Virus record (IMG/VR): IMGVR_UViG_3300023179_004149
Span: 62,001-126,000 of that record
DNA: 64,000 nucleotides
Direction: 5' to 3' (one strand)
A program made the position numbers and the translations under genes. The number at the start of each line of letters is the position of its first letter. Position 1 is the stretch's first letter. This document shows, piece by piece, positions 436 to 37,684 of the stretch. Below the pieces are notes generated by a model, which was not told where the DNA came from, did no database searches, and saw nothing but the letters and a program-made list of their open reading frames with translations.

Positions 436-2682
436 TTATATCGTGTCTATTAATGTTGAGATGTTATTTTCCTTTTTAACAAGAATTCTGTGGTCGGCCC
501 AATCTTGAATCAATGGATTATGACTGATAATCCAAATGTGTTCAAAGAACTGTTTGAGTTTTTCAAAAAACAGACCGACTTTTTCAAGGTTCTGGTTGGA
601 TACTTTTCCAGTAACTTCATCAAACACTATGATATTAGGTTTTGGTAATGAACATACTTTACTCAACACACATCTTAGTGCTAGAGAACTTACAGTTTTT
701 TCATACCCCGATCCCGCATTAATTGGTTTTTCAACACCTGTTTCGCTATCTACCATCCAGAACTCAACCTCACCCTTTTCATTCATGCGCATCTCAAGAA
801 CAAACTCACAACTATCAGCAAGAAGTATTTTAAGATGGCTATTAATGAGTGGTATCATAGTACTTAACACCATTTTAGAAATACCATTCTTACCGTAAAT
901 ATCCAAGTAAACCTTAAAAATGTGGTCTATCATTTCTTCGTTCTTCAACTCTTTGAGTAGTGCGTTATAACCCTCTATTTTACCATTAGCGGTCAGAATA
1001 TCTCTATCTGTTCCGTTTATTTGTAAAGATACGGTTTCTTTTTCTTCGTTCAAAGAATTCAAAGAGAATTTTATTTTTTGAATATCAGTATCTATTAACT
1101 GGTTCTTCTCAACCCTACTCTTTATATCTCTATAGTTCTTTAACTTCTCATTACCACGGATTAAGCTATCCTGATACGCTTTCAACTCTAAACGGCTTTT
1201 CTCAATTAATAAATTGTTCCTGTTATATAAATCCCAGGCTACTTTTGCTTTATCAAGACCCTCTATCTTAGTATTGGCTATTTTTATAATCTCTTGTGTT
1301 GTTTCAAGAGATTCGTTTTTCTCTTTGAGTGACGTTTCGTTTTTCTCGATTTCATCACTATGATCAACGTTGTCCAGTGCCCTTTTACAAGTCTGGCAAA
1401 TCTCACTATTCTTCAACATATCGATAGTGGCTTCAATCGTATGTATTTCCAGTTTGGTTTTTATCTCTCGTTCTGTATAATCTCGAAGCTCTCCTTTGAG
1501 AGTACCGTATAAATCAATATCATACTCAATTTTAGGTTCTGGCATAGCGTCGATAAGGTTTCTGATACTCTCTTCCTTATCTTTGATAAGAGATTCGAGT
1601 TTCTGTATACCAGTGATGATGTTTTCTTCGCTCGATTTGTATAATTCGGTATCGATATCGTTATATCGAGTTTTATATAATTTTTCTGATTCATCTGTCA
1701 ATTCGGTTATTTTGGTTTTTAGTTCGTTAAGTTTTGAGTTTAAACCAACTAACATACCTTGGTATTGTTTAATATGATCTTCTTCAAGCGTAATTTTAGC
1801 CATAATTTCTTGGCTATTGTTATAGTAAAGCTTTGATTTCTCTTTCCATTCTGTATATTTTTTCTTGGCTATCTTTTCTTTCTCACGGAAAAATTCAAGA
1901 CCTATAAACCTGGTTAATATCCTACCGCGCTCAGTTGGTTTGGTTTTAATTAAATCATCCAGATTATCACCCGTTGTTAAGATCGTAATCAAGAAATCAT
2001 CATAAGTACCAACATATGTTTTGATTAATTCATCGGTATACTTTCTTTGCTCACCATTTAATTGTTTTACGCCACCACGAGGTAAAACCTGATAAAAATC
2101 AACATCACCCTTACAAGTATGGGAACCATCTTTAGCTTTTTTTCTGGTTATTGTTCTTTTGATAATGTAGTCATCACCTTCAATCTCGACCTTACCCTTT
2201 ACCTCAACCAAATCAGAATCAAGGAATCTGTTAAAGACTTCCTCATTCTTATCTGTTTTGGTTGTAGTACCAAAAAATAAGAACAATAATAAGTCAACTG
2301 TCATAGTTGTGTTATGTGAAACAATACCATTAGTGTAATATTGCGCCACCTCGTCCACCTGAATATCATATAAATCACTTTTTTCCTCTAATAACTCAAC
2401 GCTCTTAACTAAACTCACACCATTAATTGTCTGTATGGGTTCACCAACCTTAAGAGTGTTAAGATTAATAAAGTGTCCATCCTCATGTTTCACTTTATGT
2501 AAATCAGCTCCCTCAACAACCATTGCATTTTCAAGTTCGCAACGATAAACATCAGCATTTTTTTCCGTAATACCGCACCATATTATGTCTTTATAACCAT
2601 AGGGTGTGTTTACCTTAATTCCAAGATTACCATATTTTTGATATAGCTCATTTAATTTACCAATCGTTATCTCTTTAATCAT
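436..2682 (-). CDS. sbcC: Split-intein C-fragment (124 aa) fused to the C-terminal part of Rad50/SbcC (gp46-like) ATPase
   Basis: Intein blocks B (GADLH), F (LYDIQV) and G (NGIVSHN) are followed by TTMTVD, the end of Walker A. Also long coiled coil, zinc hook CQTC, signature-like GSGYEK, Walker B IIVFDE and H-loop IISH. Confidence 0.93.
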   Translation of the reverse strand: MIKEITIGKLNELYQKYGNLGIKVNTPYGYKDIIWCGITEKNADVYRCELENAMVVEGADLHKVKHEDGHFINLNTLKVGEPIQTINGVSLVKSVELLEEKSDLYDIQVDEVAQYYTNGIVSHNTTMTVDLLLFLFFGTTTKTDKNEEVFNRFLDSDLVEVKGKVEIEGDDYIIKRTITRKKAKDGSHTCKGDVDFYQVLPRGGVKQLNGEQRKYTDELIKTYVGTYDDFLITILTTGDNLDDLIKTKPTERGRILTRFIGLEFFREKEKIAKKKYTEWKEKSKLYYNNSQEIMAKITLEEDHIKQYQGMLVGLNSKLNELKTKITELTDESEKLYKTRYNDIDTELYKSSEENIITGIQKLESLIKDKEESIRNLIDAMPEPKIEYDIDLYGTLKGELRDYTEREIKTKLEIHTIEATIDMLKNSEICQTCKRALDNVDHSDEIEKNETSLKEKNESLETTQEIIKIANTKIEGLDKAKVAWDLYNRNNLLIEKSRLELKAYQDSLIRGNEKLKNYRDIKSRVEKNQLIDTDIQKIKFSLNSLNEEKETVSLQINGTDRDILTANGKIEGYNALLKELKNEEMIDHIFKVYLDIYGKNGISKMVLSTMIPLINSHLKILLADSCEFVLEMRMNEKGEVEFWMVDSETGVEKPINAGSGYEKTVSSLALRCVLSKVCSLPKPNIIVFDEVTGKVSNQNLEKVGLFFEKLKQFFEHIWIISHNPLIQDWADHRILVKKENNISTLIDTI
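2311..2682 (-). mobile_element. Split intein C-fragment (IntC, 124 aa; +1 residue Thr)
   Basis: MIKEITIGKL...YYTNGIVSHN|T: HINT-fold motifs without block A and without an endonuclease domain. Confidence 0.9.
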
Positions 2683-3688
2683 TTGTTTTTATATTTAAAA
2701 ATTGTAAACATTTTTTTATTGTTAATTCTTTATTTTTTCTATAATCAGAATCCCATATTGTCAACACCTCATAACCCTCATCAACCGCAGCCAACTTTTT
2801 AAATTCGTCTTGCTCTTGAATTTCTTTAGCTGTTAAATTTTTTCTAAAAGGATGTGGGTAATCATCTGGTTTATATTTCGAAGGGTTACCATGATAATCA
2901 TCGCCATTATACTCAATAATTTTTTTCATTTTAATATCAGCGAAATCATATAACCACAAACCACCATTTTTTTTATTTAATCTAATTTCTTTATTTTTAG
3001 TAGCGAAATAAACATGCTCTCTGTTCTTTATTTCATATTGTTCTAAAATTAAATAAAATAATTCTTGTGATATTTTAGAGTACCCTATTTTTAAATTACC
3101 GCCAGACGATAAAGATTTTTGCCAATCAATTTGTCGTTTATTAAAAATAAATTTACCTCTTTCCTCACCATGTTTTGCGACACATTTTTCAAGTGTAAAC
3201 GTTCTCTGTTGTTCGGATATTCTATCAATAGCCTCAGCCTCCGTTAAACCCCTTTTCATCCAATATTCCTTTTTTTTGGGGGAAGCATTACCTTCTTTTT
3301 GTTTTCTTTTCTGGTATTTTAATTTACCCACAATATCACCATATTTTTCAATAAACGCCCTTTCGGTATTCATTAAATGACATTCTATTTTAAATTTAGC
3401 TTCTTCTTTGGTAAAACCTTTATCTAGCCAATAATCAATATAAACTGGTTTAAATTTCTTGATTTTTAATTCCGCTTCATCTTTAGATAAACCTCGTTGA
3501 ATCCAATAATTTACCGAATAAGCCGAACCATTTGCAATAGTTATATTATTATCTTTTAATCGTTTTACTATAACTGATTCATCAACACCAAATTCTTTTG
3601 CTATTTTTTTCGTCGATTTTAATTCTTTAGTGTAATCGGTAATGATTTTTTCAACTTGTTCTGTAGTAAATTCATATTTTTTACCCAT
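2675..3688 (-). CDS. Free-standing homing endonuclease, Vsr-like/EDxHD (DUF559-like) nuclease with N-terminal HTH and repeats
   Basis: C-terminal YDF...IIEYNGDDYHGN...GYEVLTIWDSD. N-terminal HTH (STKKIAKEFGVDESVIVKRL) and three YWxxxGxxxxEA repeats. Lies between the two intein halves. Confidence 0.85.
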   Translation of the reverse strand: MGKKYEFTTEQVEKIITDYTKELKSTKKIAKEFGVDESVIVKRLKDNNITIANGSAYSVNYWIQRGLSKDEAELKIKKFKPVYIDYWLDKGFTKEEAKFKIECHLMNTERAFIEKYGDIVGKLKYQKRKQKEGNASPKKKEYWMKRGLTEAEAIDRISEQQRTFTLEKCVAKHGEERGKFIFNKRQIDWQKSLSSGGNLKIGYSKISQELFYLILEQYEIKNREHVYFATKNKEIRLNKKNGGLWLYDFADIKMKKIIEYNGDDYHGNPSKYKPDDYPHPFRKNLTAKEIQEQDEFKKLAAVDEGYEVLTIWDSDYRKNKELTIKKCLQFLNIKTND

Positions 3689-3715
3689 ATTTATAGTTTC
3701 TTTACTATAAATATG
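3686..3715 (-). promoter_or_regulatory. Hairpin sequestering the endonuclease start codon, with a TATTTATA promoter-like motif in its 5' arm
   Basis: Coding strand CATATTTATAGT-aaagaa-ACTATAAATATG is a perfect 12-bp inverted repeat ending in the ATG. Confidence 0.8.
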
Positions 3716-3749
3716 TCCAGCTAACTAAAAAGGTAAGGGTATTGAAAAA

Positions 3750-4355
3750 TTATTTTAATTCTTCGGGTATAAAACCCAACGTTTTCAATATATAATCCTC
3801 ATTATATTCAATTGTTATATTAGTATTTTCTTTAATACATTTACCGCCATAATTTGGCGGGTCGGATATTACCGACGTAATACCGTTTTTATTTTCATAT
3901 TTGAGTTTATTACCCGAACCATACGACAAGAAATTAGAGAATTCAATCTCTTTGATTTTAAATTTCTTATATCTATTAGTTTGTTCTTTGTAATTCTCTA
4001 ATTCGATATTTACTGAGTTGTCCAGTTTGATGAGATGGGCTGTGTTAATCTCAATGTTGTTATCGATCAAGTATTGTTCGATTAACTTCTTTTGGTAGTT
4101 TTCATCTAAAATAAGCTCAGAAGCGTCCGCTCCACCCTCAGCCACAAGTTCAGAGTTCTTGCTAATAATTGGCTTAAAAATAACTTTAACTTTATTGGTC
4201 TTATACCTGTTTTGAAAATATTTTTCAATTTCTTTTTCTTTTACTTGCGAATGATTATCTAACGTATCTTCCCATATAACTTTTATATAGTTGTTACTAT
4301 CATAAATATCGTCATTTTTGGGCTTAGATGTCGTATATGTCATTGTAGTTATCAT
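3750..4355 (-). CDS. sbcC: N-terminal part of Rad50/SbcC (with ~130-aa extension) fused to a split-intein N-fragment
   Basis: FKIKEIEFSNFLSYG (typical SMC/Rad50 first strand), then GITSVISDPPNYGGK (Walker A up to the Lys), then CIKENTNI... and a stop 29 aa later. Confidence 0.9.
   Translation of the reverse strand: MITTMTYTTSKPKNDDIYDSNNYIKVIWEDTLDNHSQVKEKEIEKYFQNRYKTNKVKVIFKPIISKNSELVAEGGADASELILDENYQKKLIEQYLIDNNIEINTAHLIKLDNSVNIELENYKEQTNRYKKFKIKEIEFSNFLSYGSGNKLKYENKNGITSVISDPPNYGGKCIKENTNITIEYNEDYILKTLGFIPEELK
3753..3839 (-). mobile_element. Split intein N-fragment (IntN, 29 aa, Cys1)
   Basis: CIKENTNITIEYNEDYILKTLGFIPEELK* matches block A (C-h-x-x-x-T-x-I) directly after the Walker A Lys. 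Confidence 0.88.
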
Positions 4356-4593
4356 TTTCTATTCTTTTATTGGTTACGGTAATTGTGTTGTCTTCTTGTT
4401 TAATTTCTGGTTGAGGTGTTTCTTCTTTTCCTATCGGACTTTGTTTAATCTCAATGTCTGGTTTATTACCGTACTTAAGAACCGAAAAAGCATTCCCAAT
4501 GAGATCATTTAAAAATTTATCTGGATCGCCAATATCGTTAATCTTACAATATAATTCGATCTCATCAAGTTGTTTCTTATTAAGTTTAAGCAT
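4324..4593 (-). CDS. hypothetical protein (89 aa)
   Basis: ATG at 4593 overlaps the sbcD stop (ATGCTTAA) and is preferred over the track's TTG start at 4620. Fills the gap between sbcD and sbcC-N. Confidence 0.65.
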   Translation of the reverse strand: MLKLNKKQLDEIELYCKINDIGDPDKFLNDLIGNAFSVLKYGNKPDIEIKQSPIGKEETPQPEIKQEDNTITVTNKRIENDNYNDIYDI

Positions 4594-5386
4594 TGGTAAA
4601 TATTTCGCAACCCTCTTCAATATCCGAAAAATCAGTTATTTTGAAGGTAAGGTATTTAACGGGATTATCGATATCGTAAAGTTTATAGTCGAAACCATTA
4701 TCAGTAATAGTAAGAACACCATATCCGTGTTGGGACACAGTTTCTCCGTAATTTTGTTGAATCATGCTACCAGGATAGATAACATCTATACCTGATTTGG
4801 TTTTTAATATCTGTCTTTTGTGTATATCACCGCACATTACGATATGACAATCAGCGAACTTTTCAACGTCGACACCATGAGTAAAACTATAACCCATTTC
4901 ATTAACAGCTCCAACTATTACACCATGAAACAACCCTATTTTCTTTTTACCTTTATATGAATTATGATGTAGTTGTTCGGGTGTAGCATGACTATCAAAA
5001 ATAGAATACACGACCCAGGCTACGTCATCATCTTCAATAACATCAGACTTGGTGTAATAGTGAATATTATCCAAATCCAAGGCCTTGATGATTGGTGTTA
5101 ACGCATCCATACGCTCTTTGTTCTGTTCAACAATATCGTGATTACCAGGTATTATAATTACTTTCTTAGTTACTGACGAGCATTGAGTTAAAAACCAACT
5201 GACCTCGTTTACCAACTCAGGGCTTATTTGGTTTCTTGAATGTACTATATCACCAGCGATAACAATCCTATCAGGTTGTATCTTTTTCATTTGGTCGATA
5301 AAGTTTGAACACACAGATCTGAATTCTATGTGTCTTTGGATATTCCTAAAATGAATATCTGCAATATGCGCAATTGTTTTAATCAT
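4586..5386 (-). CDS. sbcD: Mre11/SbcD-like (gp47-like) metallophosphoesterase nuclease
   Basis: Five phosphoesterase motifs: ADIH, AGDIVH, PGNHD, FHG, GDIH. Adjacent to Rad50. Confidence 0.92.
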   Translation of the reverse strand: MIKTIAHIADIHFRNIQRHIEFRSVCSNFIDQMKKIQPDRIVIAGDIVHSRNQISPELVNEVSWFLTQCSSVTKKVIIIPGNHDIVEQNKERMDALTPIIKALDLDNIHYYTKSDVIEDDDVAWVVYSIFDSHATPEQLHHNSYKGKKKIGLFHGVIVGAVNEMGYSFTHGVDVEKFADCHIVMCGDIHKRQILKTKSGIDVIYPGSMIQQNYGETVSQHGYGVLTITDNGFDYKLYDIDNPVKYLTFKITDFSDIEEGCEIFTNA

Positions 5387-5399
5387 AATATTTTTATAT

Positions 5400-5825
5400 T
5401 TAACAATGTTCTTTTCTTGAATATTTAGTCCAATGCAGCCAACCTAATGTTTTAGTAATAAAACCCCATTCACGTGTTCTTTTGAAATTAAAAAATAAAG
5501 TATGACATGGTATTTCATTACCATTTTCATCCATCGCTAATTGCAATCTATGTACCCATGTTGCTGGCCTAAAGATTATTGAGCCTGGTTTATACCAAAC
5601 ACTTTTTTGAACCCCGTTATTATCACTAATTTCATAATAACCGCCCTTAAGCACAATACTCATAAAAGCCCAAGGATGGTCGTGCAAACATTCATCATCA
5701 CTTAAAACGATATTATGATGTTTAATCGAAAATAATTCGCCAATAGTTAAAAGAGTTCTCCTTATCAAATAAGGTTTACCATCATCTCTGGTAATAACGG
5801 TTCTTTTAAAGAGCTTTTTTTTCAT
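5400..5825 (-). CDS. cupin-fold protein
   Basis: LHDHPWAFMSIVLKGGYYE and a distal WVHRL form the cupin HxH...E...H metal motif. Confidence 0.7.
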   Translation of the reverse strand: MKKKLFKRTVITRDDGKPYLIRRTLLTIGELFSIKHHNIVLSDDECLHDHPWAFMSIVLKGGYYEISDNNGVQKSVWYKPGSIIFRPATWVHRLQLAMDENGNEIPCHTLFFNFKRTREWGFITKTLGWLHWTKYSRKEHC

Positions 5826-5827
5826 TT

Positions 5828-7555
5828 TTATTTTAATAATTTTAGTTTAAAATGGTCAATCAACATTTCAGCTTCGCGCTTCATGTATGCAACTGGAATT
5901 AATTTGAAAGTCTGAGAAAACTTATCCCAATAGAATAAACCAGCCCTATTAAACTTACGTCCAGTTTCTCTTTCGTACATTACACCATATACCGACAACT
6001 GTAATGTATAATCGTTGTACTGACAATGAGTCAAATGGTTTACTGGGAAATGTAAATATTCACCATAGGCATTCTCGTATTCAAATTTTTTATTTGTATT
6101 ATGTGTTTTAATATAATTTCTCGTCGCTAAATAAGTGTGATTTTTGCTTTCAACGGCCAAACATTTTGTTGGTACGGTATCTATTTTTTCTATTTTTTTA
6201 ACATATCTAAATTTCGATTTTTCTGTATCAGGTAAACAAATATCATTATAATTTTCCGTTTTACATAAAAAAGGATTCACACCGCCATGAGGTTTAAAAC
6301 AAACGTGAAGCGTCTTTATCTTTTTGTTATTACATGTTGTAAAAGCTTTTATTATTGTTGGTTTAAACCCTAACGAAGATATTAGTGTAGACATACCATC
6401 AGCTTGCCATTGTTGGGTTGTTATCATAACGCACCTGTCCCTTGTTTTATTATAATACCCGTCAGTATCCATAAACCCACGTAATAAATCTAACCTTTGT
6501 TGTTTGGATGCTCGTAAATATATATCAGGTATGTGTTTATTTTTTAATAACCCTAATTTATTTAACTTACCTCGTAAACCATAAATTGTTCTCGATTCGG
6601 CTAAACCACTTGAGCTGCCTGAAACATCTGAGCCTGTATCATACCCCCTATTTTTAAGTTCCTCCCAAATCATTTCGTTCATATTTGTCAAAACCCCACA
6701 GTCTTTTGAACCATCACCCAACCAAACCCCAAATACATAAGGGTCTATCGGTAACTCCAAATTTTTTTCCGTAATGACTTCGGTTGTTTCTATGCGTATG
6801 GGTTGTTTTTGTTTAAACATACCATATAAATCCTCTGTTGTTTTTATTACATTAGAATATTTATATTTTGATAATCTATTAGATATTTCCCATTTATGTT
6901 CGTGATCACAAATTATAGTATCATTTGTATCAAATGTTATTTTATAACATGGGTTATGGTGTATTTCCGATACATGTAATACTTTTGTTAAATTTCCTTC
7001 ACCATCAAAAATAACATCACCCACATTAATATCCGACATTAATTTAAAACCATCTTCTGTCGGTATTTCGGTATCAAGAGATAAACCTTTAAAATCCCAC
7101 ACATTAAATTTATCATAATCTAAGTCTTCGATAATATCGGATGTACCAGCAATACCAAGCTTATCATTAAACTCGTAAGACATGATATATTCTGGTTTTA
7201 AACGATCCGAATTAATCAAACTTAGTTTCTCGTCTGAACACACCTTTTTAAAAGCATTTAAAACCGTTTTTTCGTACTCATCCCTGGGAGAGTATATTCT
7301 ATGCGGCGCAAGTAAAAAGCGCTCTAAAATAGCGTGTAAATTAGTTCCGTATTCATTTGCAAGACGGTTGATTTCTCGCCATTCAGCAATCACCTCTTCT
7401 TTTGTTATTCCTTTTCTGTCCGCCACCCTCTGAGCGTGATAGTCTTCATCAAACTTTTCTTTGTACTTACCCAACATCGTGGTTACCGAAGTGTATTGCA
7501 TGTTTGGAAACTTGTCATTCACATAGGTGTGGGTTTCATGAATTAATTTTATCAT
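5828..7555 (-). CDS. PD-(D/E)xK (RecB/Cas4-like) exonuclease containing an intein
   Basis: Extein motifs SVTT, GTNLH, AGTSD, WDFK|TN and YTLQLSVY. Spliced length 245 aa. Confidence 0.88.
   Translation of the reverse strand: MIKLIHETHTYVNDKFPNMQYTSVTTMLGKYKEKFDEDYHAQRVADRKGITKEEVIAEWREINRLANEYGTNLHAILERFLLAPHRIYSPRDEYEKTVLNAFKKVCSDEKLSLINSDRLKPEYIMSYEFNDKLGIAGTSDIIEDLDYDKFNVWDFKGLSLDTEIPTEDGFKLMSDINVGDVIFDGEGNLTKVLHVSEIHHNPCYKITFDTNDTIICDHEHKWEISNRLSKYKYSNVIKTTEDLYGMFKQKQPIRIETTEVITEKNLELPIDPYVFGVWLGDGSKDCGVLTNMNEMIWEELKNRGYDTGSDVSGSSSGLAESRTIYGLRGKLNKLGLLKNKHIPDIYLRASKQQRLDLLRGFMDTDGYYNKTRDRCVMITTQQWQADGMSTLISSLGFKPTIIKAFTTCNNKKIKTLHVCFKPHGGVNPFLCKTENYNDICLPDTEKSKFRYVKKIEKIDTVPTKCLAVESKNHTYLATRNYIKTHNTNKKFEYENAYGEYLHFPVNHLTHCQYNDYTLQLSVYGVMYERETGRKFNRAGLFYWDKFSQTFKLIPVAYMKREAEMLIDHFKLKLLK
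6098..7087 (-). mobile_element. Class 3 (WCT) intein starting with Gly, with LAGLIDADG endonuclease, 330 aa
   Basis: Starts GLSLDTEIPT. Block B CDHEHKW, block F PTKCLAV, block G IKTHN|T. LAGLIDADG motifs FGVWLGDG and LRGFMDTDG. Confidence 0.9.
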
Positions 7556-16468: not shown

Positions 16469-19400
16469 TTAAAGCTGTGTTGTTTTAATATTAATATTTT
16501 TTACGTTAAATACGTTTTTTGTTTCTACTGTACTTAATGAAATGTTTTCCACCCCAGCGAGAGTTATGTTAATTGTACTATTTGTTGATACATTTTTCAA
16601 TGTTATTACCCTGGTTTCCACATTATTTTCTACACTTATTGACGTCTGTACAAATGCTGTGTTAATTACTGAATCATTTACGAATATTGCTAAATTATCA
16701 ATCGTACCCGATTTAAACGTTGTCTGTTTTTTCGACGTAGAGTAACTTAACATAATCTGTAGATCCGTTTGTGGTATTATACTAAATTTATTATCATATG
16801 TTGTGTATTTATTAACAACATAGTTTTGCGTTATTGGTAATAAATTACTATCTGCCGTTAATACAGATAAGTTAGCTGAAGCATTAGATGATTGGTTAAT
16901 TATCAATCTAACCGTATATGTGTTCAATATTTGAGCTGCCGCAGCAATTGATGCCTTTGGAGTAAGCGTAGTTGTTCTATTTAACTTATCCAGATTCGTA
17001 TTAAATAGCATACCGAAAATAGTTGTTGCCTGGTGACCACAGGCATTTGTTGCTGTTAATTTACCCATAAATTCGCCAGTAACGGGATAACCCACCTGAT
17101 CTTTCGGATAATAGTAATCCATAATAATATCGGTTCCGTTTAATCTGAAATCAAATTCACCGTATTGCGTTACAATTCTTCTGTTTTCATCGGTTACATC
17201 ATAAAACTTATTCAGGGCCGTAACCAATTTAGCATTCGTCGTCGTACCGCTAAATGATTTGCTGGTAAATCCTGTTTTCAAGTTTAAGGAATTATTATAG
17301 AAATATAAATCATTTGTCACCCCCGTAGTTAATGTTTCAATTGTTGATTCGAACACTTCAACGCGAGTTCTATCTTTATAGAACGTAAAATTATTTACTA
17401 AACAGAAATCGCGTTCTTCCCAATTCGTTATATCTAATGCGGGTTCTGTTACACCAGATGCGACAGTAACCGCATCTGGGTTTACATACTTATATAGAAC
17501 ACCTCTGTTAACACTATATTTTTTGGAGTGGAACAATGATGAGGTATCGAAAGTAATTAAATTAGGTGTAACGAACAACCCTGGGTTGTTCCTTTCGTCT
17601 TCTCGACATAATCTTTCAAACAACGGCATTAAACCAATTGCCTCACCCTGGTAAGGTCGTAAATAATACGATCTTGTGTTAAACGAAGCGTCAGTAAAAC
17701 CAGATGCTATTTTAATCGGGTTATACGGTACTGATGGTTTCAAATAAATGTTTGAAACCCCAAGTCTTGAAATACCAAACACGTCATTATAGTTTGTACC
17801 CTCGACTTCGCCGTCACCAGTTGTCATACCCATGGTTGAGCCCGTATAGTAACCCTTTCCAAAAGTACCGTTTGTGTAATAACCGTTGTTGTTTAATATC
17901 TTATTTTGCGTTATAATTTCATAATTATCCAATATGTCATATGATCTATCAATGAATATATGATTTGGTAATAATACACTATTCCAACGACTACTTTCTG
18001 ATGTATAACCACTAACTGAACCCGTTGCAATATAAGGTGTGTTATTTGTAACTGGTAACGTTTTTGGTAATCTGGATGCTGTTGAGCTAAAGTTATATAC
18101 GTTACCCTCATCAACATACGGTACCCAAGAAGAACCTAAGAATGTATAGGTCGTAACACCACTCGCACCAATACCACCAGTTTCACCACTCGCAGCAAGC
18201 GATCTGTGGCTAAATAATTCACTGGTTAATTTAGTCCAATATGTTGTGTTAGATACTGATGTGCCCGATGGCACCGTCGTCTTAGCGTAGAAATACCTAT
18301 ATACCGTCGATGACCCTTCCGTTACTCCGCTTGTTACGAATTCCCCACGAGTATATACTCGTGTTGGTTCATACGTGGTTGATTTATTGTAAACGTATCT
18401 AAAGAATATATTCGTACCAGTATATGTTGCCAGGATTAAATCACCAAATGAATAACTCATAGGTGATGTGGTATCGAATGAAACAATATTACGATATACG
18501 TAATCAATAACGTTAGGTGTTGGGTAACCGTTAACCATACTTTCTTCGTAACCCCAAGGAGTGAAGTTGGCTGGGTTATAACGTTCCAATTCAATAAAAC
18601 ATGATCTCGATCCTCTCGGTCTGTAAATTGGGTGTATTGAACCTGTTGTACCTGTTGTTGAGTAACAATGTGATGTATGTATCTCATTGATACACACATA
18701 TAACTTATATTTTGTTTCCGTCACTATTGTACTACCAGAAACCATTTTATAATCCTCAATCGCCACTTTAACAATATCATTCAACTCATAGTTAATGATC
18801 TGTTCGTTAAACTCTGGAACTGTTGATAACAGATCCTGGTATAGCTCAGTTGAATACACATCATTTTCCTTAGCGTAATATTGGAAGATTGTAGCTCCCG
18901 TTGTATTAAGTATGCCCGTATAGTATCTTCTGTTTAATCTAATTTGATTTAATATATTAGTCGAATAATTCAATTGTGTGTAATCGTTCAACCCATCACC
19001 ATAAGATATAAATGTCTTAGTCGCCGTTGTAGTCGATGTACCCAATGCAGTACCGTTAAGATATGTGTTTTGTGGTACATAATTTACTGTTCTATTATGG
19101 TTTAATAAACGTCTACTTACATTTTTACCAATACTGATTGTGTTGGCTATATTACTGAATTCTGTTTGCTTAGGTGTATTACCCAAATAGTAATCAAAAT
19201 AATTGAAGTCATATGATACTGGTCGACCATTAACACCCGTGGCCGTTGTTGTACCACTTGATGCTGTAATTTCACCAGAATAATCATATATTTTACTTCT
19301 TACACTAAATGTGAAATCAATTTTATCATTACCCAATGGCTTATCATATTCCTTGGTATTGTATTCCAATGTACCAGTTGTAAACTTTTTATAGTAATCC

Positions 19401-22400
19401 AGGTACATTTTATTCATCAAATACGAAGGATCCAATGAATAAGTAACATTAGGTGTTGTTAACACATTATATTTACCACTACCGTAATTTAATTTAAGTT
19501 CATTAAAGCTTAAATCAGCCAGGTTGTATATTGGTTTAAGCGACAAACCTTCACTTCTATACCCAAATTTATTAAATACATTACCTGAATTAAATAACAC
19601 CCTAAATCTTGGGTCATTCAGTGAATCGGCAACATCAGGATTACTATGTGTATATTCGAGTTTTTCATATCTCGATAAAGTACATGGTACCGTTATAGGT
19701 ATGATGTTTAAATATATTTTATCACCAGCCTTAAAGAAGTCCTGGTAAGTGTATTCAAATTGTCTATCGTCTGGTAAATCATCACCATTAAACGTAAATG
19801 ACTGCTCATCGTATAGAACTTGATTACTATTCAATAACTGAATCCTAACCGTTTGTGCTATGTTCGATTGTGACTCAAAATATAATTTGATCTTAATTGT
19901 TAAGAAGTTACTTTTTGTTACGAGATAATAGCCAGGGTTGGTTTTTATCAACGTTAAATCAGTACCGATACTATTAAAGTTTTCGTTTAATGACTGTATG
20001 GATACCGCATTGTTGGTATTCAGCGCCAGGGTTAAAGTATCCTGTAATGTATGTATGAATATACTATCTTCTTTTGGTGTATAGAACGGCCCAACATAAG
20101 CTGGGTTAACTGGATATAAACCATCGAATGTTAATCCGATAGAATCACTCACATATATCTGATTACCAACAAGTGTGTCAGTAACTCTATATGTTGTACC
20201 TGGTGTATCTCCGCTGAAAACGTGAACCAGGTTAAGTGATTTAGTTAAATTTATTGATGCCTTATTAGCAATTGGGTCTAATATTATCTTGTCAATATAA
20301 GCCGTATCAACCTGCATGAACGGATCTGTTGCTGTTCTATCTTCATATCTACCATACAAACCACCTGTTATACCAGTTGTTGTCGAAGGTAAACCATCGG
20401 TTCCAATGTTACTCACAAAAGTAACACCCGTTATAATTGAAATATTTCCATTTGTGGCATACATCGTATCACCAGTAACCTTATATAATTTAGAATCGCC
20501 CGACACGGAAGTACTTATCAACTTACTTGTATCTGTTGAATCTATAAGACCAACATATTCACCGTAGTAGTACGTCTGACCGCTGGTGTAATTAAATATT
20601 TGTTCGTAATTGGTAGTCCAGTTACTAATATAGCCCCTACTTGTACCAGTTGGTTTTGTTGCTGATCTATCCTTACTATAACCAAAATATTTAGGTTGTT
20701 TTATATACAATAACGCACCAGTATTATCAGTAAAGCTCAATAAAGTTGTACCAGTGTAATTGGTTAGATTTATAGTTCTACCAGTAAAGTCAAAGTAACA
20801 TACGTGTGGTTTTGGTGGGGGGCAATCATAAGTTAAACCAATTCGAATAAACGCTTGCGCTGCACCGATACTATTCATATAGAACGATCTTTCAGTACCC
20901 GTAATACCAGTACTATCCTGGAATGATACGGTTCTTGAATCGGTGTTATAATCGATATGATCCCATAGGTATTTAGTTACCCCGCTGTATGTATCCGTTG
21001 CCGCATTTGGTGCCAATCCTTTCGTACCCCCTGTTGTTGTAATACCAGAATAAGAACCCCAGTTAAACAACGCTTTGGTGTTTAATCTATAAACATTATT
21101 TTCGTAAACCACAAATACACCATATTTAGGGCCAGCCGTATTGGTGTTACCGCTGTAAATGGTATCGTCACCATAGTTAACACCAGATGCCCATATTTCA
21201 TACCTACCCTCGCTTTCGTCGCAGAAATCAGAGATAGAGTAGAAGCTACCCAGGTATCTTTCATTACCCATTAATTCACCATATACCTTATCACCTTGTT
21301 TAGCTGTAATAGTATATGATGGAATACTACCATCAATACTTTCAGTAATAATACCTTCATTTGGTAATACCTTATTAGTACCCATATAAACGGGTCTTAA
21401 CGCCAGTTCTTGGAATTCAGAACCATCGGTACCCAACCAATTAACTGATGTGTTTAAACCGTGCTTATATTTGAATTTATTATCATTAAATGCTGAGTTT
21501 TGTATTTTCTTACCTGCATTATATATGGTTGTTGCTGGAATAAACTGTTGAATTAGTTTAATCCAGTGTGTATCGAATTGTCCCAAGAACGCTAAAGATC
21601 TTGAAATATCCATAGGGTTTGTTGTACCACTATAATAATCAAGATAGATCTTTGTTAACGTTGGGTATGTGCTGATTACCTTTCTATTTGTTGGGTTAAT
21701 GAAGTTGTTTACCGATTGTTTAACAAACTCGTTAAACGACATGTTAGTATCATCAAACGATATTGGATTACTGAATGTAAGGTCGGCATTAACCATACCA
21801 AGATTTCTCACATATTGTCTATATATTGATACATCAAGAATTCTATCAGAACCAATATACACTTCAAATTCTTTTGAGTTAATGGTCAACTTAGTGTTAT
21901 CACTATAATAGTCAGTATATCCATTATTCTCATCGTTAACCAGTTGAGTTGTGCTCGTTACCACCATCCAACTCTTACGATCATCGATGGTTCTTTCCAA
22001 TTCAAATAAATGAACCGAACCACTTTTTTTGAAAGCGTTTATATACGCCTTACCAAAATCGTATGGCCCGTAGTTGAACTTATCCTCGATAGCAGAACCA
22101 CCATTACCCTGGTAATGTATGTTAAATGGGGTTGTTGGATAACCTTGAGTATCGAATGGTTGTAAATCCAATAATACCTGCGGATCATCTGTCGAACCAA
22201 CGTAAATTTTATTCAACACATCACCCACATTTAATGGTCTTTCAGCTAAATACACATATTCATTCAATTCAAATATATCATCGGGGAAACCAACTAATTT
22301 GAGAATGAACTCAATTGATTTTCTTGTTCCTTTTGATTTGAAAAGATATGCTGCGTTGATCAAGATTCTTCTCCAGAGTTCAATATCAACCTCAGCAGGT

Positions 22401-23905
22401 GTCATTGTCGTCGAAGACACACTTGTTGTAAATAAAGATTCGATAAGCGTGTTTTCGTCTTCCAATTCATAAGTTTCAAAACCGAGCATATGTGCAAAGT
22501 TTTTCAACAATAAATCAGGTACGTTTTCTACTTTATCGTAACTTACGTGTCTCATAAAGGTAATACCATCGATGTATTTTCTAATCTCATCGAATTGTTT
22601 ACCGTAAAGCTGGAATAATAAATTAACTTTTCTATCCTCTGTATCAAACTCCTTTAATGAATCTGTTGTTAAGAAACGAGCAATTAAATTCGTTTTCGCA
22701 GCATCATAGCTCTCGGCCAGGTCATTTAATTTTGTCGTATATGTATCAAATGAATCAGTGAACATATCAATATTCACATCATCGAGCTTAGGGAAGTACA
22801 CAGTTTCCTTAGTTTCAACAATCACACCATTATCGGATAACGTAGGGAATACGAAATCACTTTTATACTGGTTCGTTGCCAAATCATATGATAGTAAGAA
22901 CGAAGCGAAATCGGATAGTTCACTAAAGAACTCATCATAAACCGCTTGTTTTGGTTTTATATAAAAACTATTATTTGTTTCTGAATTAATGTTTACCAGG
23001 GCACCGAACGGATTACCATTCACAACCACCGTAATACCCGCATTAGCATCCGTTGTAGTTGGTAGTGTTACACTCACAATAGGGTATTCCACCCCATTAA
23101 AATAAATGACGTAGTTACTGTATTGTTTAGCTAAGTTTCTATAAACCGTAATATTCTCATTATCGGTTGATGTTGCGCCAGTGCTAAAATAATTGATACC
23201 AAACGGATTAGCTAAACCAAATAAGCTCACCTTGAATTGTGAACGGTTTTCGTTAGTTATATATGCATAATTACTGATGTTTGGTTTATATATTGATACC
23301 GCATTTGATTTCAACGCCGCTGGGAATTGATTGTATATCTCCATTAAAGAAGTTTTGATTCTTTCTTTCAAAGAAGAATACAATACATGATTATCTAACT
23401 TTTTACGATCAAATAACACCTTAACCGATAAATTCTTATCGATCAGTTGTTGAGTTGTTTCAACATATGGTTTACCGCTAAAATACGATAAATTTCTATC
23501 GGCAATATCATTTATCGTGTATGATCCAACTGGATCATTACCTACTGATTCAGTAGATTGTGCTGGGCTATTTATCTTAGTTGATGTGCTTATGCTGAAA
23601 TTACCCATGGTGAAATATGGGTCACCCTGTATTTCATCTTTTGAATTGGCAAACTGTAAACCAACTAATTTGTTACCGAAGGTATCGTTACCGAACGCAC
23701 CAATAACACCCTGGGCTTTTCTCCACCTCAAAGCGTTTTCATATTGCACATATGATGAACAAGGTACATATTTTGTTTCACCGTTTATCAAATATGTACG
23801 ATAACCATCACACCCCAATGATCTTGATGCTGCGATTGCTTCATCGGCAGTATTATATAAATCACGAATGATTTGTTGGTCATATGTAAAACTAAGATTA
23901 GCCAT
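16469..23905 (-). CDS. giant baseplate wedge protein (P2 gpI / T4 gp7-like domain)
   Basis: VPDLLLKNFAHMLGF...ELWRRILINAAYLFKSKGTRKSIEFIL motif. 2478 aa, downstream of gp25/gp6-like genes. Confidence 0.7.
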   Translation of the reverse strand: MANLSFTYDQQIIRDLYNTADEAIAASRSLGCDGYRTYLINGETKYVPCSSYVQYENALRWRKAQGVIGAFGNDTFGNKLVGLQFANSKDEIQGDPYFTMGNFSISTSTKINSPAQSTESVGNDPVGSYTINDIADRNLSYFSGKPYVETTQQLIDKNLSVKVLFDRKKLDNHVLYSSLKERIKTSLMEIYNQFPAALKSNAVSIYKPNISNYAYITNENRSQFKVSLFGLANPFGINYFSTGATSTDNENITVYRNLAKQYSNYVIYFNGVEYPIVSVTLPTTTDANAGITVVVNGNPFGALVNINSETNNSFYIKPKQAVYDEFFSELSDFASFLLSYDLATNQYKSDFVFPTLSDNGVIVETKETVYFPKLDDVNIDMFTDSFDTYTTKLNDLAESYDAAKTNLIARFLTTDSLKEFDTEDRKVNLLFQLYGKQFDEIRKYIDGITFMRHVSYDKVENVPDLLLKNFAHMLGFETYELEDENTLIESLFTTSVSSTTMTPAEVDIELWRRILINAAYLFKSKGTRKSIEFILKLVGFPDDIFELNEYVYLAERPLNVGDVLNKIYVGSTDDPQVLLDLQPFDTQGYPTTPFNIHYQGNGGSAIEDKFNYGPYDFGKAYINAFKKSGSVHLFELERTIDDRKSWMVVTSTTQLVNDENNGYTDYYSDNTKLTINSKEFEVYIGSDRILDVSIYRQYVRNLGMVNADLTFSNPISFDDTNMSFNEFVKQSVNNFINPTNRKVISTYPTLTKIYLDYYSGTTNPMDISRSLAFLGQFDTHWIKLIQQFIPATTIYNAGKKIQNSAFNDNKFKYKHGLNTSVNWLGTDGSEFQELALRPVYMGTNKVLPNEGIITESIDGSIPSYTITAKQGDKVYGELMGNERYLGSFYSISDFCDESEGRYEIWASGVNYGDDTIYSGNTNTAGPKYGVFVVYENNVYRLNTKALFNWGSYSGITTTGGTKGLAPNAATDTYSGVTKYLWDHIDYNTDSRTVSFQDSTGITGTERSFYMNSIGAAQAFIRIGLTYDCPPPKPHVCYFDFTGRTINLTNYTGTTLLSFTDNTGALLYIKQPKYFGYSKDRSATKPTGTSRGYISNWTTNYEQIFNYTSGQTYYYGEYVGLIDSTDTSKLISTSVSGDSKLYKVTGDTMYATNGNISIITGVTFVSNIGTDGLPSTTTGITGGLYGRYEDRTATDPFMQVDTAYIDKIILDPIANKASINLTKSLNLVHVFSGDTPGTTYRVTDTLVGNQIYVSDSIGLTFDGLYPVNPAYVGPFYTPKEDSIFIHTLQDTLTLALNTNNAVSIQSLNENFNSIGTDLTLIKTNPGYYLVTKSNFLTIKIKLYFESQSNIAQTVRIQLLNSNQVLYDEQSFTFNGDDLPDDRQFEYTYQDFFKAGDKIYLNIIPITVPCTLSRYEKLEYTHSNPDVADSLNDPRFRVLFNSGNVFNKFGYRSEGLSLKPIYNLADLSFNELKLNYGSGKYNVLTTPNVTYSLDPSYLMNKMYLDYYKKFTTGTLEYNTKEYDKPLGNDKIDFTFSVRSKIYDYSGEITASSGTTTATGVNGRPVSYDFNYFDYYLGNTPKQTEFSNIANTISIGKNVSRRLLNHNRTVNYVPQNTYLNGTALGTSTTTATKTFISYGDGLNDYTQLNYSTNILNQIRLNRRYYTGILNTTGATIFQYYAKENDVYSTELYQDLLSTVPEFNEQIINYELNDIVKVAIEDYKMVSGSTIVTETKYKLYVCINEIHTSHCYSTTGTTGSIHPIYRPRGSRSCFIELERYNPANFTPWGYEESMVNGYPTPNVIDYVYRNIVSFDTTSPMSYSFGDLILATYTGTNIFFRYVYNKSTTYEPTRVYTRGEFVTSGVTEGSSTVYRYFYAKTTVPSGTSVSNTTYWTKLTSELFSHRSLAASGETGGIGASGVTTYTFLGSSWVPYVDEGNVYNFSSTASRLPKTLPVTNNTPYIATGSVSGYTSESSRWNSVLLPNHIFIDRSYDILDNYEIITQNKILNNNGYYTNGTFGKGYYTGSTMGMTTGDGEVEGTNYNDVFGISRLGVSNIYLKPSVPYNPIKIASGFTDASFNTRSYYLRPYQGEAIGLMPLFERLCREDERNNPGLFVTPNLITFDTSSLFHSKKYSVNRGVLYKYVNPDAVTVASGVTEPALDITNWEERDFCLVNNFTFYKDRTRVEVFESTIETLTTGVTNDLYFYNNSLNLKTGFTSKSFSGTTTNAKLVTALNKFYDVTDENRRIVTQYGEFDFRLNGTDIIMDYYYPKDQVGYPVTGEFMGKLTATNACGHQATTIFGMLFNTNLDKLNRTTTLTPKASIAAAAQILNTYTVRLIINQSSNASANLSVLTADSNLLPITQNYVVNKYTTYDNKFSIIPQTDLQIMLSYSTSKKQTTFKSGTIDNLAIFVNDSVINTAFVQTSISVENNVETRVITLKNVSTNSTINITLAGVENISLSTVETKNVFNVKNINIKTTQL

Positions 23906-34735: not shown

Positions 34736-37684
34736 TTATTTAACCTCACATCCAGACGCTCCGCAGGCTAACTCACCTGTAAGGTCCGTATTATCATCGA
34801 ATTCAATTACCTTTGATAAATCTATATTGGTTAATGATTTCATCATCCCATCATACTGTTCCTTTGTACAGTCGGAAAACGGTGCCTGAATGTAACTACC
34901 ACCATCATAAGGTAATACTGATAAACCATTGTAAAACTCTTTATTTTCCCACATCCATAAACCAACAAGATCCCATTCGTTTTCTTTAATGTTAATTGTT
35001 GCCGATACGTTATGTGTGTTTTCACCTTTTCTGTGACCAGTTCTGATCCATTCCTTACTTACCTTTTTAACCCTTTCCAAAGTAGAAATAGCTGATTCGG
35101 TTCTTAAGATTGAATCTTTTGGTGCCATCTGTGGTACGCTGATTACAGCCGTATCGTGTGGGCGGAAGTACTCGTCTTCAACCAATTCTGGATGGTATGT
35201 TGCCAAGTAATAATAAATCGCTTCATTCTTACCAACACGGATTCTACGTATATAGTAATCGTTGTGCCAAGCGTGGATACCAGATGATGTACCAAGAACC
35301 AATGAAGATGTGCCCGATGGTTTAACTGTTGTTGATCTCGCAGCTGCATTTATACCTATTAAAGCAGCAACACGTGCGTTTTCTTCTTTTACGATATTAG
35401 CGGCTTCAACCATATCATATTCAAGTACAACACCTGAACCAATACCAGTCATGCCAACACCTATTAGGGCCTCTTTTTCGGTTGTTCTCTTCCATATCTC
35501 ACGTAAGTAATGGAAGTCAGTATAACCAGCCTGTAATGTACCTATAAACGCAGCGGCTTTAACTCTTTCGTTGTAATCCTCTTGTGAAACAATATCTGAA
35601 ACATTTACCTCAGTCAAATTACAAAATTGATTTGGTCTTAACGAAATTTCACAATTATGAGCTGAGACACCATTTAAATCAAATTCATGTACATCATCGA
35701 CAGTTACATCATAAACATCCTCAACAGCATCAACTTCAATCGATATAATTTCATCATAAAATCGTGTTCTATTGTATTTCCTCTTATATCCAGATAAAAT
35801 AGTTTTTAATTTATTTTTTTTAATTGGTTCATCAAAACCAATAATTTGATTATATATTTGAATATTATCGTTACTAATAATTAATTCAAATAACTCTTTA
35901 CAGAAATAATCGGATTTAGAACCTTTACCGTTTGGTAGTGATTTAAATTTTTCATTACTCCTTTTAAAAATTGAAGATACTATACCAAACCTAATTAATA
36001 TTCTTTGTACCCTTTTCAAAAGATTTTCATCAGCTTGTGTGAGTCTAATAGAATAACCTTTTATAAAATTACCCTGAACAGACCCGTCAGCATCAAATAA
36101 CCCTCTTAATAAACCCTGTAAAAAAACGTAAGAGGCGCTTTCTATTTTATCCGTTATTTTCTTATTACCATAAATAACATCGAACTTATTGGCTAACTTA
36201 CTAATGCCAACACATTTGATTCTTTTTTTATCATAATTGGTTATGTCTTGAATTTGTAGATCTGACCTGTGATCAACATTATCGATAATTCTTTTATAAG
36301 CTATTTCAGACATAACATCTTTAGTTTCACCCCAAAAATCAAGTGAACTATCGTTGATTGTCATAGCACCATCACCTATTAACGAACCTAAAATCCAACC
36401 CTCATCAAAACTACCATTGCCAGACCACTTATGTATATCTCTATGGTTTGAAAGTGATATTTTATCACCTATTTTCAAATCTTTTAATTCTTTCCATTCA
36501 TTAAGTAATAATTTTCTTGTTAATTTAGAAATATATTTTAACTTATGATCATTAGTTATTCTAAATTGGTATCCCTTTTTAGTAGTGACTTTATATAATT
36601 GTTTCGTTCCCGTTTTCCAAAAACCGTTCGATAACGTATTATACATTTTACCATTACTAACACAATTAAAATTAGTATTTACCAAATCAGTTACTAATTT
36701 AGCCCCAGTATCTGTCATAACCCACGAATCACCAGCCACACAGCATGGATTGGTTCCGAGACTCTTATCATTTGTAAAAAAAATACCTGGCTCACCTGAA
36801 CCTGATAATTCAATTCGTTTCCATAAATCATCAAAAAAATCTTTTGTTATACGGTGTCTTAATAAGACAGCCGAATTGTTAGCGCGACCTCTCTGTGGAT
36901 TAGATTCCCACCATTCGCCAGACTTACATGAGATCATCTCATCATCATCAGCGGAGAATAAACAAATTAACGCGGCCCTACGAATACCACCAGCTAAAAC
37001 AGCGTCGGCAATATAACAAACCATATCATGCACTTCTATCGAAGTTAATCTGTCACCATCATTTTTACTATCTAAAATCTTTTTTACGTTATGGATACAG
37101 TCTTTTAATGGTTGAGGGCCTGGTGCCTTACCACCAGATGTTATTAATCTAGCTCCCTTTGGTCGTATATCAGAATAATCAAATTGTGGTGTTGATGTTA
37201 TATCGCCAGTATACGATTTAAATAATACCTTAATTGCATCAGCCCAACCTTCAATAGAATCATTTATTAAAAACCTTCTGTTTCTATCCGCTTTTGGTTT
37301 ACGTATATCGGGTAATTTCTCAATATCATGTTTCTGTACTGAATAACCAACACCAGTACCACCCAATAATAAAAACATTATCTCAGCAAATGTATCGATA
37401 TGGTCTATTGGGGTGTAAGCACAATTAAATATCCTATTAGGTGATATTTCGATTGGTTTGCCGCCGAATTGAAGTGATCTCATGGAAGGTAGTACCTTCT
37501 TGTTATAAACCATCTGGTAGTTTTTTATTATCTCGTCTTTCAACATTGGATACTTTTTAATGTGCATATCCATGTTCCTGGTTACTAATTCATTCCAGGT
37601 CTCTCTTCGTTTCTCATCTGGAAGATACTTGGCGTACTTCATGTACACCGTAATTTCGCTTAAAATCTCTTGTGATAAATCCAT
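34736..37684 (-). CDS. nrdJ: Class II (B12-dependent) ribonucleotide reductase with intein
   Basis: PSMRSL, FNCAY, GGIRRAALI, GTNPC|CEISL (spliced), TVKPSGT and C-terminal ACGASGC. Spliced length 619 aa. Confidence 0.95.
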   Translation of the reverse strand: MDLSQEILSEITVYMKYAKYLPDEKRRETWNELVTRNMDMHIKKYPMLKDEIIKNYQMVYNKKVLPSMRSLQFGGKPIEISPNRIFNCAYTPIDHIDTFAEIMFLLLGGTGVGYSVQKHDIEKLPDIRKPKADRNRRFLINDSIEGWADAIKVLFKSYTGDITSTPQFDYSDIRPKGARLITSGGKAPGPQPLKDCIHNVKKILDSKNDGDRLTSIEVHDMVCYIADAVLAGGIRRAALICLFSADDDEMISCKSGEWWESNPQRGRANNSAVLLRHRITKDFFDDLWKRIELSGSGEPGIFFTNDKSLGTNPCCVAGDSWVMTDTGAKLVTDLVNTNFNCVSNGKMYNTLSNGFWKTGTKQLYKVTTKKGYQFRITNDHKLKYISKLTRKLLLNEWKELKDLKIGDKISLSNHRDIHKWSGNGSFDEGWILGSLIGDGAMTINDSSLDFWGETKDVMSEIAYKRIIDNVDHRSDLQIQDITNYDKKRIKCVGISKLANKFDVIYGNKKITDKIESASYVFLQGLLRGLFDADGSVQGNFIKGYSIRLTQADENLLKRVQRILIRFGIVSSIFKRSNEKFKSLPNGKGSKSDYFCKELFELIISNDNIQIYNQIIGFDEPIKKNKLKTILSGYKRKYNRTRFYDEIISIEVDAVEDVYDVTVDDVHEFDLNGVSAHNCEISLRPNQFCNLTEVNVSDIVSQEDYNERVKAAAFIGTLQAGYTDFHYLREIWKRTTEKEALIGVGMTGIGSGVVLEYDMVEAANIVKEENARVAALIGINAAARSTTVKPSGTSSLVLGTSSGIHAWHNDYYIRRIRVGKNEAIYYYLATYHPELVEDEYFRPHDTAVISVPQMAPKDSILRTESAISTLERVKKVSKEWIRTGHRKGENTHNVSATINIKENEWDLVGLWMWENKEFYNGLSVLPYDGGSYIQAPFSDCTKEQYDGMMKSLTNIDLSKVIEFDDNTDLTGELACGASGCEVK
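35654..36742 (-). mobile_element. Canonical intein with LAGLIDADG endonuclease in NrdJ, 363 aa
   Basis: CVAGDSWV...ITNDH...LGSLIGDG...LRGLFDADG...VYDVTV...SAHN|C. Confidence 0.95.

Follow-up and report, generated by a model that had tools for sequence, protein, structure and literature searches.

A Phage Rad50 Gene Fractured at Walker A by a Putative Short-N Split Intein and Vsr-Like Homing Endonuclease Cassette

Introduction

A Rad50 gene in pieces is found in a stretch of 64,000 nucleotides (nt) of viral DNA (positions 62,001 to 126,000 of the IMG/VR record IMGVR_UViG_3300023179_004149), here called the window, which belongs to a contig of 320,934 bp described as a jumbo phage. Three consecutive open reading frames (ORFs) between positions 436 and 4355 in all likelihood constitute a fractured phage Rad50 gene, in which a cassette that combines a Vsr-like homing endonuclease with a split intein of the short-N kind is inserted at the Walker A motif, the two protein halves being rejoined by trans-splicing and the cassette spreading by homing. 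To judge from sequence comparison, what is new here is Rad50 as the host gene; the element itself is of a known kind and falls within a large clade related to the split inteins VidaL and Cat.

All coordinates refer to the window, and all of its features described here lie on the minus strand. The first ORF (3750-4355, 201 amino acids, aa) encodes the N-terminal flank of Rad50 (N-extein) up to DPPNYGGK, and continues into a Cys-led tail of 29 aa and a stop codon. The second (2675-3688, 337 aa) is a free-standing endonuclease ORF with its own start and stop. The third (436-2682, 748 aa) opens with 124 residues ending in GIVSHN and then runs through TTMTVD into the remainder of Rad50 (C-extein). 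The N-terminal intein fragment (IntN, 29 aa) occupies 3753..3839, with its Cys1 codon at 3837-3839 and the stop codon at 3750-3752; the C-terminal fragment (IntC, 124 aa) occupies 2311..2682, with the Asn124 codon at 2311-2313. A spacer of 61 nt (3689..3749) lies between the IntN and endonuclease ORFs, while the endonuclease stop and the IntC ATG overlap by 8 nt (2675-2682, ATGATTAA). A preliminary description of this DNA had given coordinates, lengths and residues for the split ORFs that proved correct to the base.

The Host Gene and the Insertion Site

Profile, motif and synteny comparisons identify the host protein of the insertion as Rad50/SbcC. The 748-aa ORF matches phrog_77 (SbcC-like) with E = 2.9e-39 over residues 125-746, and the SMC_N domain (PF02463) is recorded for the orthologue P0018. 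The hallmarks of the family were all located. The C-extein (436..2310, 624 aa plus stop) holds the zinc hook CQTC (1387-1398), the signature GSGYEKT (694-714), Walker B IIVFDE (616-633) and the H-loop ISHN (517-531), and directly upstream of the fractured gene lies its Mre11/SbcD nuclease partner (4586..5386; Pfam Metallophos E = 5.5e-10, phrog_100 SbcD-like E = 1.9e-26). Walker A is complete only on joining the halves: PPNYGGK (3840-3860) closes the N-extein, and Thr+1 (codon 2308-2310), at the start of the C-extein, completes the motif. The N-extein (3840..4355, 172 aa), which also comprises a clade-specific N-terminal extension of about 130 aa and the first Rad50 strands, can be aligned over its whole length with residues 1-168 of orthologues that have no interruption. 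Synteny of Mre11 and Rad50 is kept in four further contigs (L001-L004), and a search of the 321-kb source contig gave no other close copy of Rad50. The N-terminal extension (3963-4355), which precedes the first canonical Rad50 strand, is conserved in the phage clade.

The exact site of the insertion emerges from orthologues that lack it. When the 748-aa protein was searched against 5.8 billion proteins, most matches were 785-799 aa long and covered only its last 83%, that is, the 624-aa C-extein, at identities of up to 96%; the 124-aa N-terminal segment was also present in four of the matched proteins. The interrupted state is the minority one, about 116 of the best 120 close orthologues being uninterrupted. 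Across the junction these read ANYGGKTTMTVD (ANYGGK-TTMTVD in the alignment), exactly at the extein ends of the window; one of them, P0002, is 96% identical to the window C-extein. The preliminary description had proposed a fractured Rad50/SbcC gene broken inside Walker A, between GGK and TT. Both points are borne out, the identity by phrog_77, the motifs, the Mre11 neighbour and the uninterrupted orthologues, and the position by the contiguous NYGGKTTMTVD of the latter. Piecewise alignment of the exteins with uninterrupted Rad50s, a check that it had also put forward, agrees in junction and in length: 172 + 624 residues give 796 aa, in line with the 785-799 aa of the orthologues.

An intein-less allele is available at the DNA level in contig L003, which encodes the 96%-identical uninterrupted protein and has the same gene order as the window (exonuclease, Mre11, small ORF, Rad50, DUF6576, sigma factor). 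Compared by BLASTN with L003, the window has 1529 bp of extra DNA, 3839..2311, which begins with the Cys1 codon and ends with that of Asn124. It comprises IntN, its stop codon, the spacer, the endonuclease ORF and IntC and nothing else, inserted in frame, and the DNA homology of the N-extein to L003 ends at 3840. When the insertion flanks are joined in silico, 65 of 72 bases match the L003 empty site.

Beyond these contigs, megablast of the locus against GenBank phages returned no matches, and tblastn gave only distant Rad50s together with intein matches in Salicola phage SCTP-2 and in the terminase large subunit (TerL) of Delftia phage PhiW-14. The 201-aa N-terminal piece has no PHROG match. 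In the phrog_77 profile (967 positions), the alignment of all Rad50 C-exteins begins no earlier than about position 334. An intein at the same site seems to be built into the profile, which would distort the annotation of N-terminal Rad50 pieces.

The Split Intein

The inserted HINT sequence has the features of a class-1 intein, and conservation, predicted fold and homology all point to a splicing-active one. IntC matches two solved split inteins in the PDB, VidaL (6vgv, E = 8e-6) and CatC (6dsl_B, E = 8e-5), and metagenomic relatives with E down to 6e-49, so its similarity to them is far above chance; the kinship to known short-N inteins supposed in the preliminary description is thus upheld. 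VidaL and Cat represent both families of natural short-N split inteins characterised so far. A HMMER search of 1.84 billion cluster representatives yielded 358 IntC relatives, and in 95 of the best 150 the domain stands at the extreme N-terminus of the protein. Contiguous inteins occur at the same Rad50 site in P0140, P0135, P0155, P0128 and P0151. Aligned separately, the window IntN and IntC tile the contiguous inteins of P0135, P0155 and P0140, the only leftover in P0135 being a 9-residue linker. In a structural model of P0135 the intein part has a predicted local distance difference test score (pLDDT) of about 86-95, and its best PDB match is VidaL (E = 9e-10, template modelling (TM) score 0.77), followed by dozens of inteins; at E <= 0.001 there are 55 PDB entries, and the 50 listed are all intein, bacterial intein-like (BIL) or hedgehog HINT structures.

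The expected splicing motifs are present in IntC: block B as ADLHK (His62, 2494-2508), block F as LYDIQVDEV (Asp106, 2347-2373) and block G as GIVSHN (2311-2328). The catalytic residues do not vary among the aligned split Rad50 loci: Cys1, the His of block B, the Asp of block F and the closing His-Asn are present in all of them, and +1 is always Thr (in 12) or Ser (in 3), in agreement with the Cys1 and Thr+1 assigned to the window in the preliminary description.

A short IntN of 29 aa and a long IntC of 124 aa had likewise been predicted, and the proportions are confirmed; they fall within the range of short-N split inteins (IntN of about 15-37 aa, IntC of more than 100 aa; PMC13014065). In such inteins, the split may lie after the second beta strand (S1) or after the first helix (S2) (PMC13014065). 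In the alignment with the fused VidaL construct, the third residue of the window IntC falls on residue 24, and the first helix lies inside IntC. The split is assigned to the S1 type because IntC starts where the VidaL IntC starts and holds the first helix. By alignment and modelling the site is of the kind found in VidaL and PolB16, with an added helix, and not of the TerL-type S2.

This helix divides IntN into two parts. Its core (3795-3839, 15 aa) consists of Cys1 and the beta1-beta2 hairpin, and its tail (3753-3794, 14 aa), with the motif LGF(I/L)PxELK, is helical. The tail appears as a confident short helix in the model of P0135 (residues 188-195), where the break corresponds to the interval between this helix and the next strand plus helix (212-227). 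Among 18 loci, the tail residues I17, G22, F23, P25, E27, L28 and K29 are invariant despite varying synonymous codons, while the hairpin core is mostly free to vary; the tail is therefore the most constrained part of IntN after Cys1. Every split Rad50 locus has this tail, and so do the contiguous relatives except P0140. A role in fragment capture may be envisaged for the tail.

The Intervening Endonuclease

The middle ORF is predicted from its modelled fold to be a Vsr-like homing endonuclease of the I-Bth0305I type, which would cleave DNA. It belongs to phrog_22677 (E = 4.9e-30), has 365 protein relatives, and retrieved 369 relatives in IMG/VR when its profile was used for a scan; two homologues are named very-short-patch-repair endonuclease by the Joint Genome Institute. 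An AlphaFold2 model built with 25 homologues (pLDDT 85.6) has a helix-turn-helix (HTH) at its N-terminus, followed by three helical repeats (YW..G.s..EA), and at its C-terminus an alpha/beta domain of Vsr-like (EDxHD) type. Foldseek retrieved Vsr with this model (1cw0, probability 0.99; 1vsr, 0.98) and the catalytic domain of I-Bth0305I (3r3p, probability 0.89, TM 0.62), with E-values that are weak (about 0.1-0.6) because the query is multi-domain. The residues D248, E259, D263, H266 and D313 are invariant in the endonuclease alignment and fit an active site of the Vsr-like type. Neither the single sequence nor a 25-sequence profile matched the PDB, and the nuclease domain has no significant Pfam match; the Vsr-like assignment consequently rests on the predicted fold. 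It bears out the intervening Vsr-like endonuclease of the preliminary description, through the likeness to Vsr and I-Bth0305I and the invariant D/E/D/H/D set. The N-terminal DNA-binding region, made up of the HTH and the three helical repeats, is specific to the family of the window enzyme.

Mobility and Selection

Comparison with L001, an independent NCBI assembly that has the same three ORFs, indicates that the cassette moved recently as a unit between phages. The exteins of the two loci differ by a synonymous divergence (dS) of about 0.90, with a ratio of nonsynonymous to synonymous divergence (dN/dS) of about 0.045, whereas dS within the cassette is 0.07 for IntN, 0.09 for the endonuclease and 0.17 for IntC. 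In 60-bp bins, identity rises from 75-90% to 95-100% exactly at 3839 and drops again shortly past 2311, where a co-conversion tract of about 100 bp is possible. Because cassette dS is 0.07-0.17 against about 0.90 in the exteins, and because the boundaries are sharp, the cassette must be much younger than the divergence of the host genes. Its presence is, moreover, polymorphic among close relatives. Both of its longer components have been kept under purifying selection, with dN/dS of 0.04-0.12 for IntC and 0.11-0.21 for the endonuclease (0.12 and 0.21, respectively, against the more distant L002).

Distribution of the Arrangement

The locus survey covered the best 80 of the 369 IMG/VR endonuclease relatives, together with L001 and L002. 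Twenty-three of the surveyed loci, from different assemblies, are Rad50 genes with the same three-ORF layout. IntN has 29 aa in them (30 in one) and ends in the conserved tail, IntC has about 124 aa, and SHN is followed by Thr or Ser; in most, the start of IntC and the endonuclease stop are no more than a few bases apart. The split layout, with intact ORFs, is kept where exteins are at most about 70% identical (L002, L006-L025), and independent assemblies in four collections (NCBI, Logan, ENA and IMG/VR) contain it.

In the other surveyed loci (L026-L084), a nuclease domain of the same family lies between short-N split inteins at GK/T P-loops. These include TerL loci, with an IntN of 53-58 aa at GK/T, and Clp-type ATPase loci, with an IntN of 28-38 aa in both the D1 and D2 P-loops; no description of such Clp-type cases was found in the literature searched. 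TerL C-terminal halves with an IntC-like N-terminus are also among the HMMER matches. A phmmer search with the window C-extein recognised only 32 of the 150 top IntC relatives as Rad50. In a sample scanned against PHROG, however, the proteins of about 650 aa with an N-terminal IntC are SbcC-like C-halves of shorter, gp46-type Rad50s, so the Rad50 share among IntC relatives must exceed 32 of 150. Across this set, Thr+1 reads simply as the P-loop Thr, as is the rule at GK/T sites. The preliminary description had treated the Thr nucleophile as a special feature; the residue is indeed present, but it is no oddity.

It is conceivable, although we hold it only tentatively, that the Rad50 cassette stands for a large and undescribed subfamily of natural short-N split inteins, with dozens of Rad50 clusters at 50% identity, sister groups in TerL and Clp, P-loop sites that are all GK/T or GK/S, a single endonuclease family, and the IntN helix LGF(L/I)PxELK as an affinity handle. 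If that were true, the subfamily would supply many mutually orthogonal peptide ligases compatible with Thr or Ser at +1, as well as a new design element for semisynthetic splicing.

A related case was noticed outside the survey: gene 204 of Salicola phage SCTP-2 (L085 3243-5213, annotated as a hypothetical protein) is UvsX/RecA-like and has a contiguous VidaL-like intein in its P-loop (GDSG/C...SHN/SGKS).

Comparison with Known Split Inteins

Split inteins are typically of the canonical type, in which IntN is long, with about 100 aa, and IntC has only about 35-40 aa (PMC10189870); the proportions in the window are the reverse. Natural short-N inteins that have been characterised are few (AceL-TerL, GOS-TerL, VidaL, and PolB16), and reviews call them rare (PMC11766414, PMC13014065). 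The closest of known structure is VidaL (PDB 6vgv), the best match of IntC by sequence and of P0135 by structure. VidaL (Burton et al. 2020) shares with the window an S1-type split, Cys dependence, a short IntN (16 aa), a long IntC and an origin in a phage metagenomic P-loop protein (PMC13014065). It differs in its host gene and is only about 30% identical to the window IntC; the window IntN has the extra conserved 14-aa helix, and the window element is known from sequence. The PolB16 OarG intein is also split at S1, and its IntN of 15 aa equals the 15-aa core of the window IntN, but it is cysteine-less (Ser1/Ser+1), has an IntC of 168 aa and resides in a PolB polymerase (PMC10189870). AceL-TerL and GOS-TerL are natural short-N inteins with an IntN of 25-37 aa, an IntC of 104-115 aa and Cys at +1 (PMC11766414). 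Together with the consensus intein Cat (6dsl), whose CatC is the second PDB match of IntC, they resemble the window element as short-N split inteins of phage genes, and differ from it in the S2 split after the first helix (PMC13014065), the terminase host and the +1 Cys, where the window has Rad50 and Thr. Inteins with Cys1/Thr+1 or Ser1/Thr+1 are already known from Mxe GyrA and Neq Pol (PMC11766414).

The order of the genes has an equally clear precedent. The fractured genes described by Dassa et al. (2009) (gp41-1, NrdJ-1, IMPDH-1 and others; PMC2677866) have the identical arrangement of N-half with IntN, endonuclease ORF, and IntC with C-half, and the endonuclease is Vsr-like in half of those loci (PMC2677866). 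The same authors describe an SbcD-like gene that a Vsr-like ORF has fractured in the absence of an intein, and do not list a Rad50/SbcC host (PMC2677866). The preliminary description held that the combination seen in the window has no characterised example. This stands insofar as no split intein hosted by Rad50, SbcC or gp46 was found among the fractured genes, canonical split inteins and short-N inteins that full-text searches of the literature retrieved, though an earlier mention may exist elsewhere; the combination is not singular in nature, being one of a large metagenomic clade. Its suggestion that the 29-aa IntN would make a useful tool is confirmed as to the short fragment, with a value that is incremental, since natural IntN of 15-16 aa have already been characterised (PMC13014065).

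Short-N split inteins are wanted as tools, the small fragment being accessible by peptide synthesis. The locus adds to them a Cys1/Thr+1 intein whose native junctions are GGK/TTM, and the extra helix of its IntN is a candidate affinity element. It also illustrates that the short-N arrangement is common in P-loop ATPase genes of metagenomic phages, and it provides a clean natural case of the transfer of a homing cassette between phage genomes that have diverged.

Proposed Mechanism and Alternatives

According to the model favoured here, a mobile cassette would have inserted in frame between the Walker A Lys and Thr codons (GGK/TT), so that two polypeptides would be expressed, N-extein-IntN (201 aa) and IntC-C-extein (748 aa). 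IntN, with its beta hairpin and conserved short helix, would dock into the incomplete HINT domain of IntC. In the reconstituted class-1 intein, an N-S acyl shift at Cys1 would be followed by transesterification onto the hydroxyl of Thr+1, by cyclisation of Asn124 and by an O-N shift. The product would be a Rad50 of 796 aa with an intact P-loop, acting with the adjacent Mre11. In mixed infections, the endonuclease would cut intein-less Rad50 alleles, and repair would copy the whole cassette into them. Sequence and model taken together, a functional ATPase very probably requires protein trans-splicing, which would place an essential recombination ATPase under obligatory post-translational assembly.

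Some observations weigh against this mechanism. The HINT model was built for the contiguous relative P0135, rather than for the two window pieces together. The Pfam model Intein_splicing gives IntC 17.7 bits (E = 0.0033), which is below its cutoff of 35.8, and IntN has no Pfam match. Thr at +1 is a weaker nucleophile than Cys or Ser. In the window, moreover, two secondary positions of the catalytic motifs are substituted: the Thr of TxxH in block B is Ala (ADLH), and block F reads AQYY where most relatives have His (HQYY). These last substitutions would also suit an intein whose halves no longer splice and serve as a non-covalent dimerisation module holding the Rad50 fragments together, for which the NrdA of Aeh1, the product of a phage gene fractured by a mobile element that reportedly assembles non-covalently, is a precedent (PMC3045599). 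Such a module is nevertheless improbable: mere docking would not need the primary catalytic residues, which are invariant in every split Rad50 locus examined, and without splicing the Lys and Thr of the P-loop would be held apart by a HINT domain of about 150 aa.

Decay of the gene is more improbable still. If Rad50 were inactivated, with the phage using host SbcCD or another pathway, the scarcity of interrupted alleles among the best 120 orthologues would be understandable; yet both extein ORFs are intact and evolve at a dN/dS of about 0.045, IntC is under strong purifying selection, and the intact split layout persists in lineages as divergent as those of L002 and L006-L025. Least credible of all is that the arrangement is an assembly chimera, or that the halves are joined at the RNA level in the manner of an intron. 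In favour of this reading, the source is a metagenomic contig; but the layout recurs across the independent assemblies of four collections, the boundaries coincide exactly with codons of the intein blocks A and G, and selection at the protein level acts on the inserted HINT coding sequence. Trans-splicing of a Rad50 fractured by a homing cassette remains the most probable account of the locus.

Spacer and Expression

The spacer contains an element of about 32 nt (3706-3737; consensus CTTTACC-N-GGTTATATTTATA) that hardly varies among 15 loci, although the endonucleases of these loci share only about 45-55% identity, and that resembles a two-box promoter. A perfect 12-bp inverted repeat (3704-3715 / 3686-3697), the 3' arm of which contains the endonuclease ATG, accompanies it in the window, where the RNA fold has z = -3.55. 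The repeat recalls the control of T4 homing endonuclease genes by a hairpin and an internal promoter (PMC2988022), and also control elements to which Dassa et al. drew attention (PMC2677866). A regulatory hairpin common to the family is not claimed: RNAalifold gave no consensus structure for the spacer, and the proposed TTTACC/GGGTAAA stem has no covariation. The sequence TATAAATA in the spacer was considered as a T4-type late promoter for the endonuclease ORF and rejected, as it overlaps the ATG. The 8-nt overlap of stop and start suggests that translation of IntC-Rad50C is coupled to that of the endonuclease ORF.

Other Features of the Window

Further insertion polymorphism is found close to the fractured gene. 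A 141-aa ORF between the exonuclease and Mre11 genes (5400-5825) is missing from the empty-allele contig L003, and in L001 its place is taken by a LAGLIDADG-like ORF of 281 aa (L001 2468-3313), which marks the position as a hotspot. The neighbouring PD-(D/E)XK exonuclease ORF (5828-7555) contains an insert of 330 aa (about 6101-7090) that its L001, L003 and L004 orthologues lack. This insert (GLSLDTE...YIKTHN) sits between WDFK and TNKK and begins with Gly rather than Cys or Ser; it has the residue triplet characteristic of class 3 inteins, with Trp in DHEHKW, Cys in PTKCLAVES and Thr in KTHN, and a weak LAGLIDADG match. Farther away, a ribonucleotide reductase ORF (34736-37684, 982 aa) matches its PHROG in two stretches and has intein-like block B and F/G segments (about residues 374-439 and 669-703); it probably carries a third intein.

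Several window ORFs of 600-900 aa have no PHROG match, and the same holds for three huge ORFs of 2478, 2160 and 2591 aa (16469-23905, 44223-50705 and 53687-61462, respectively).

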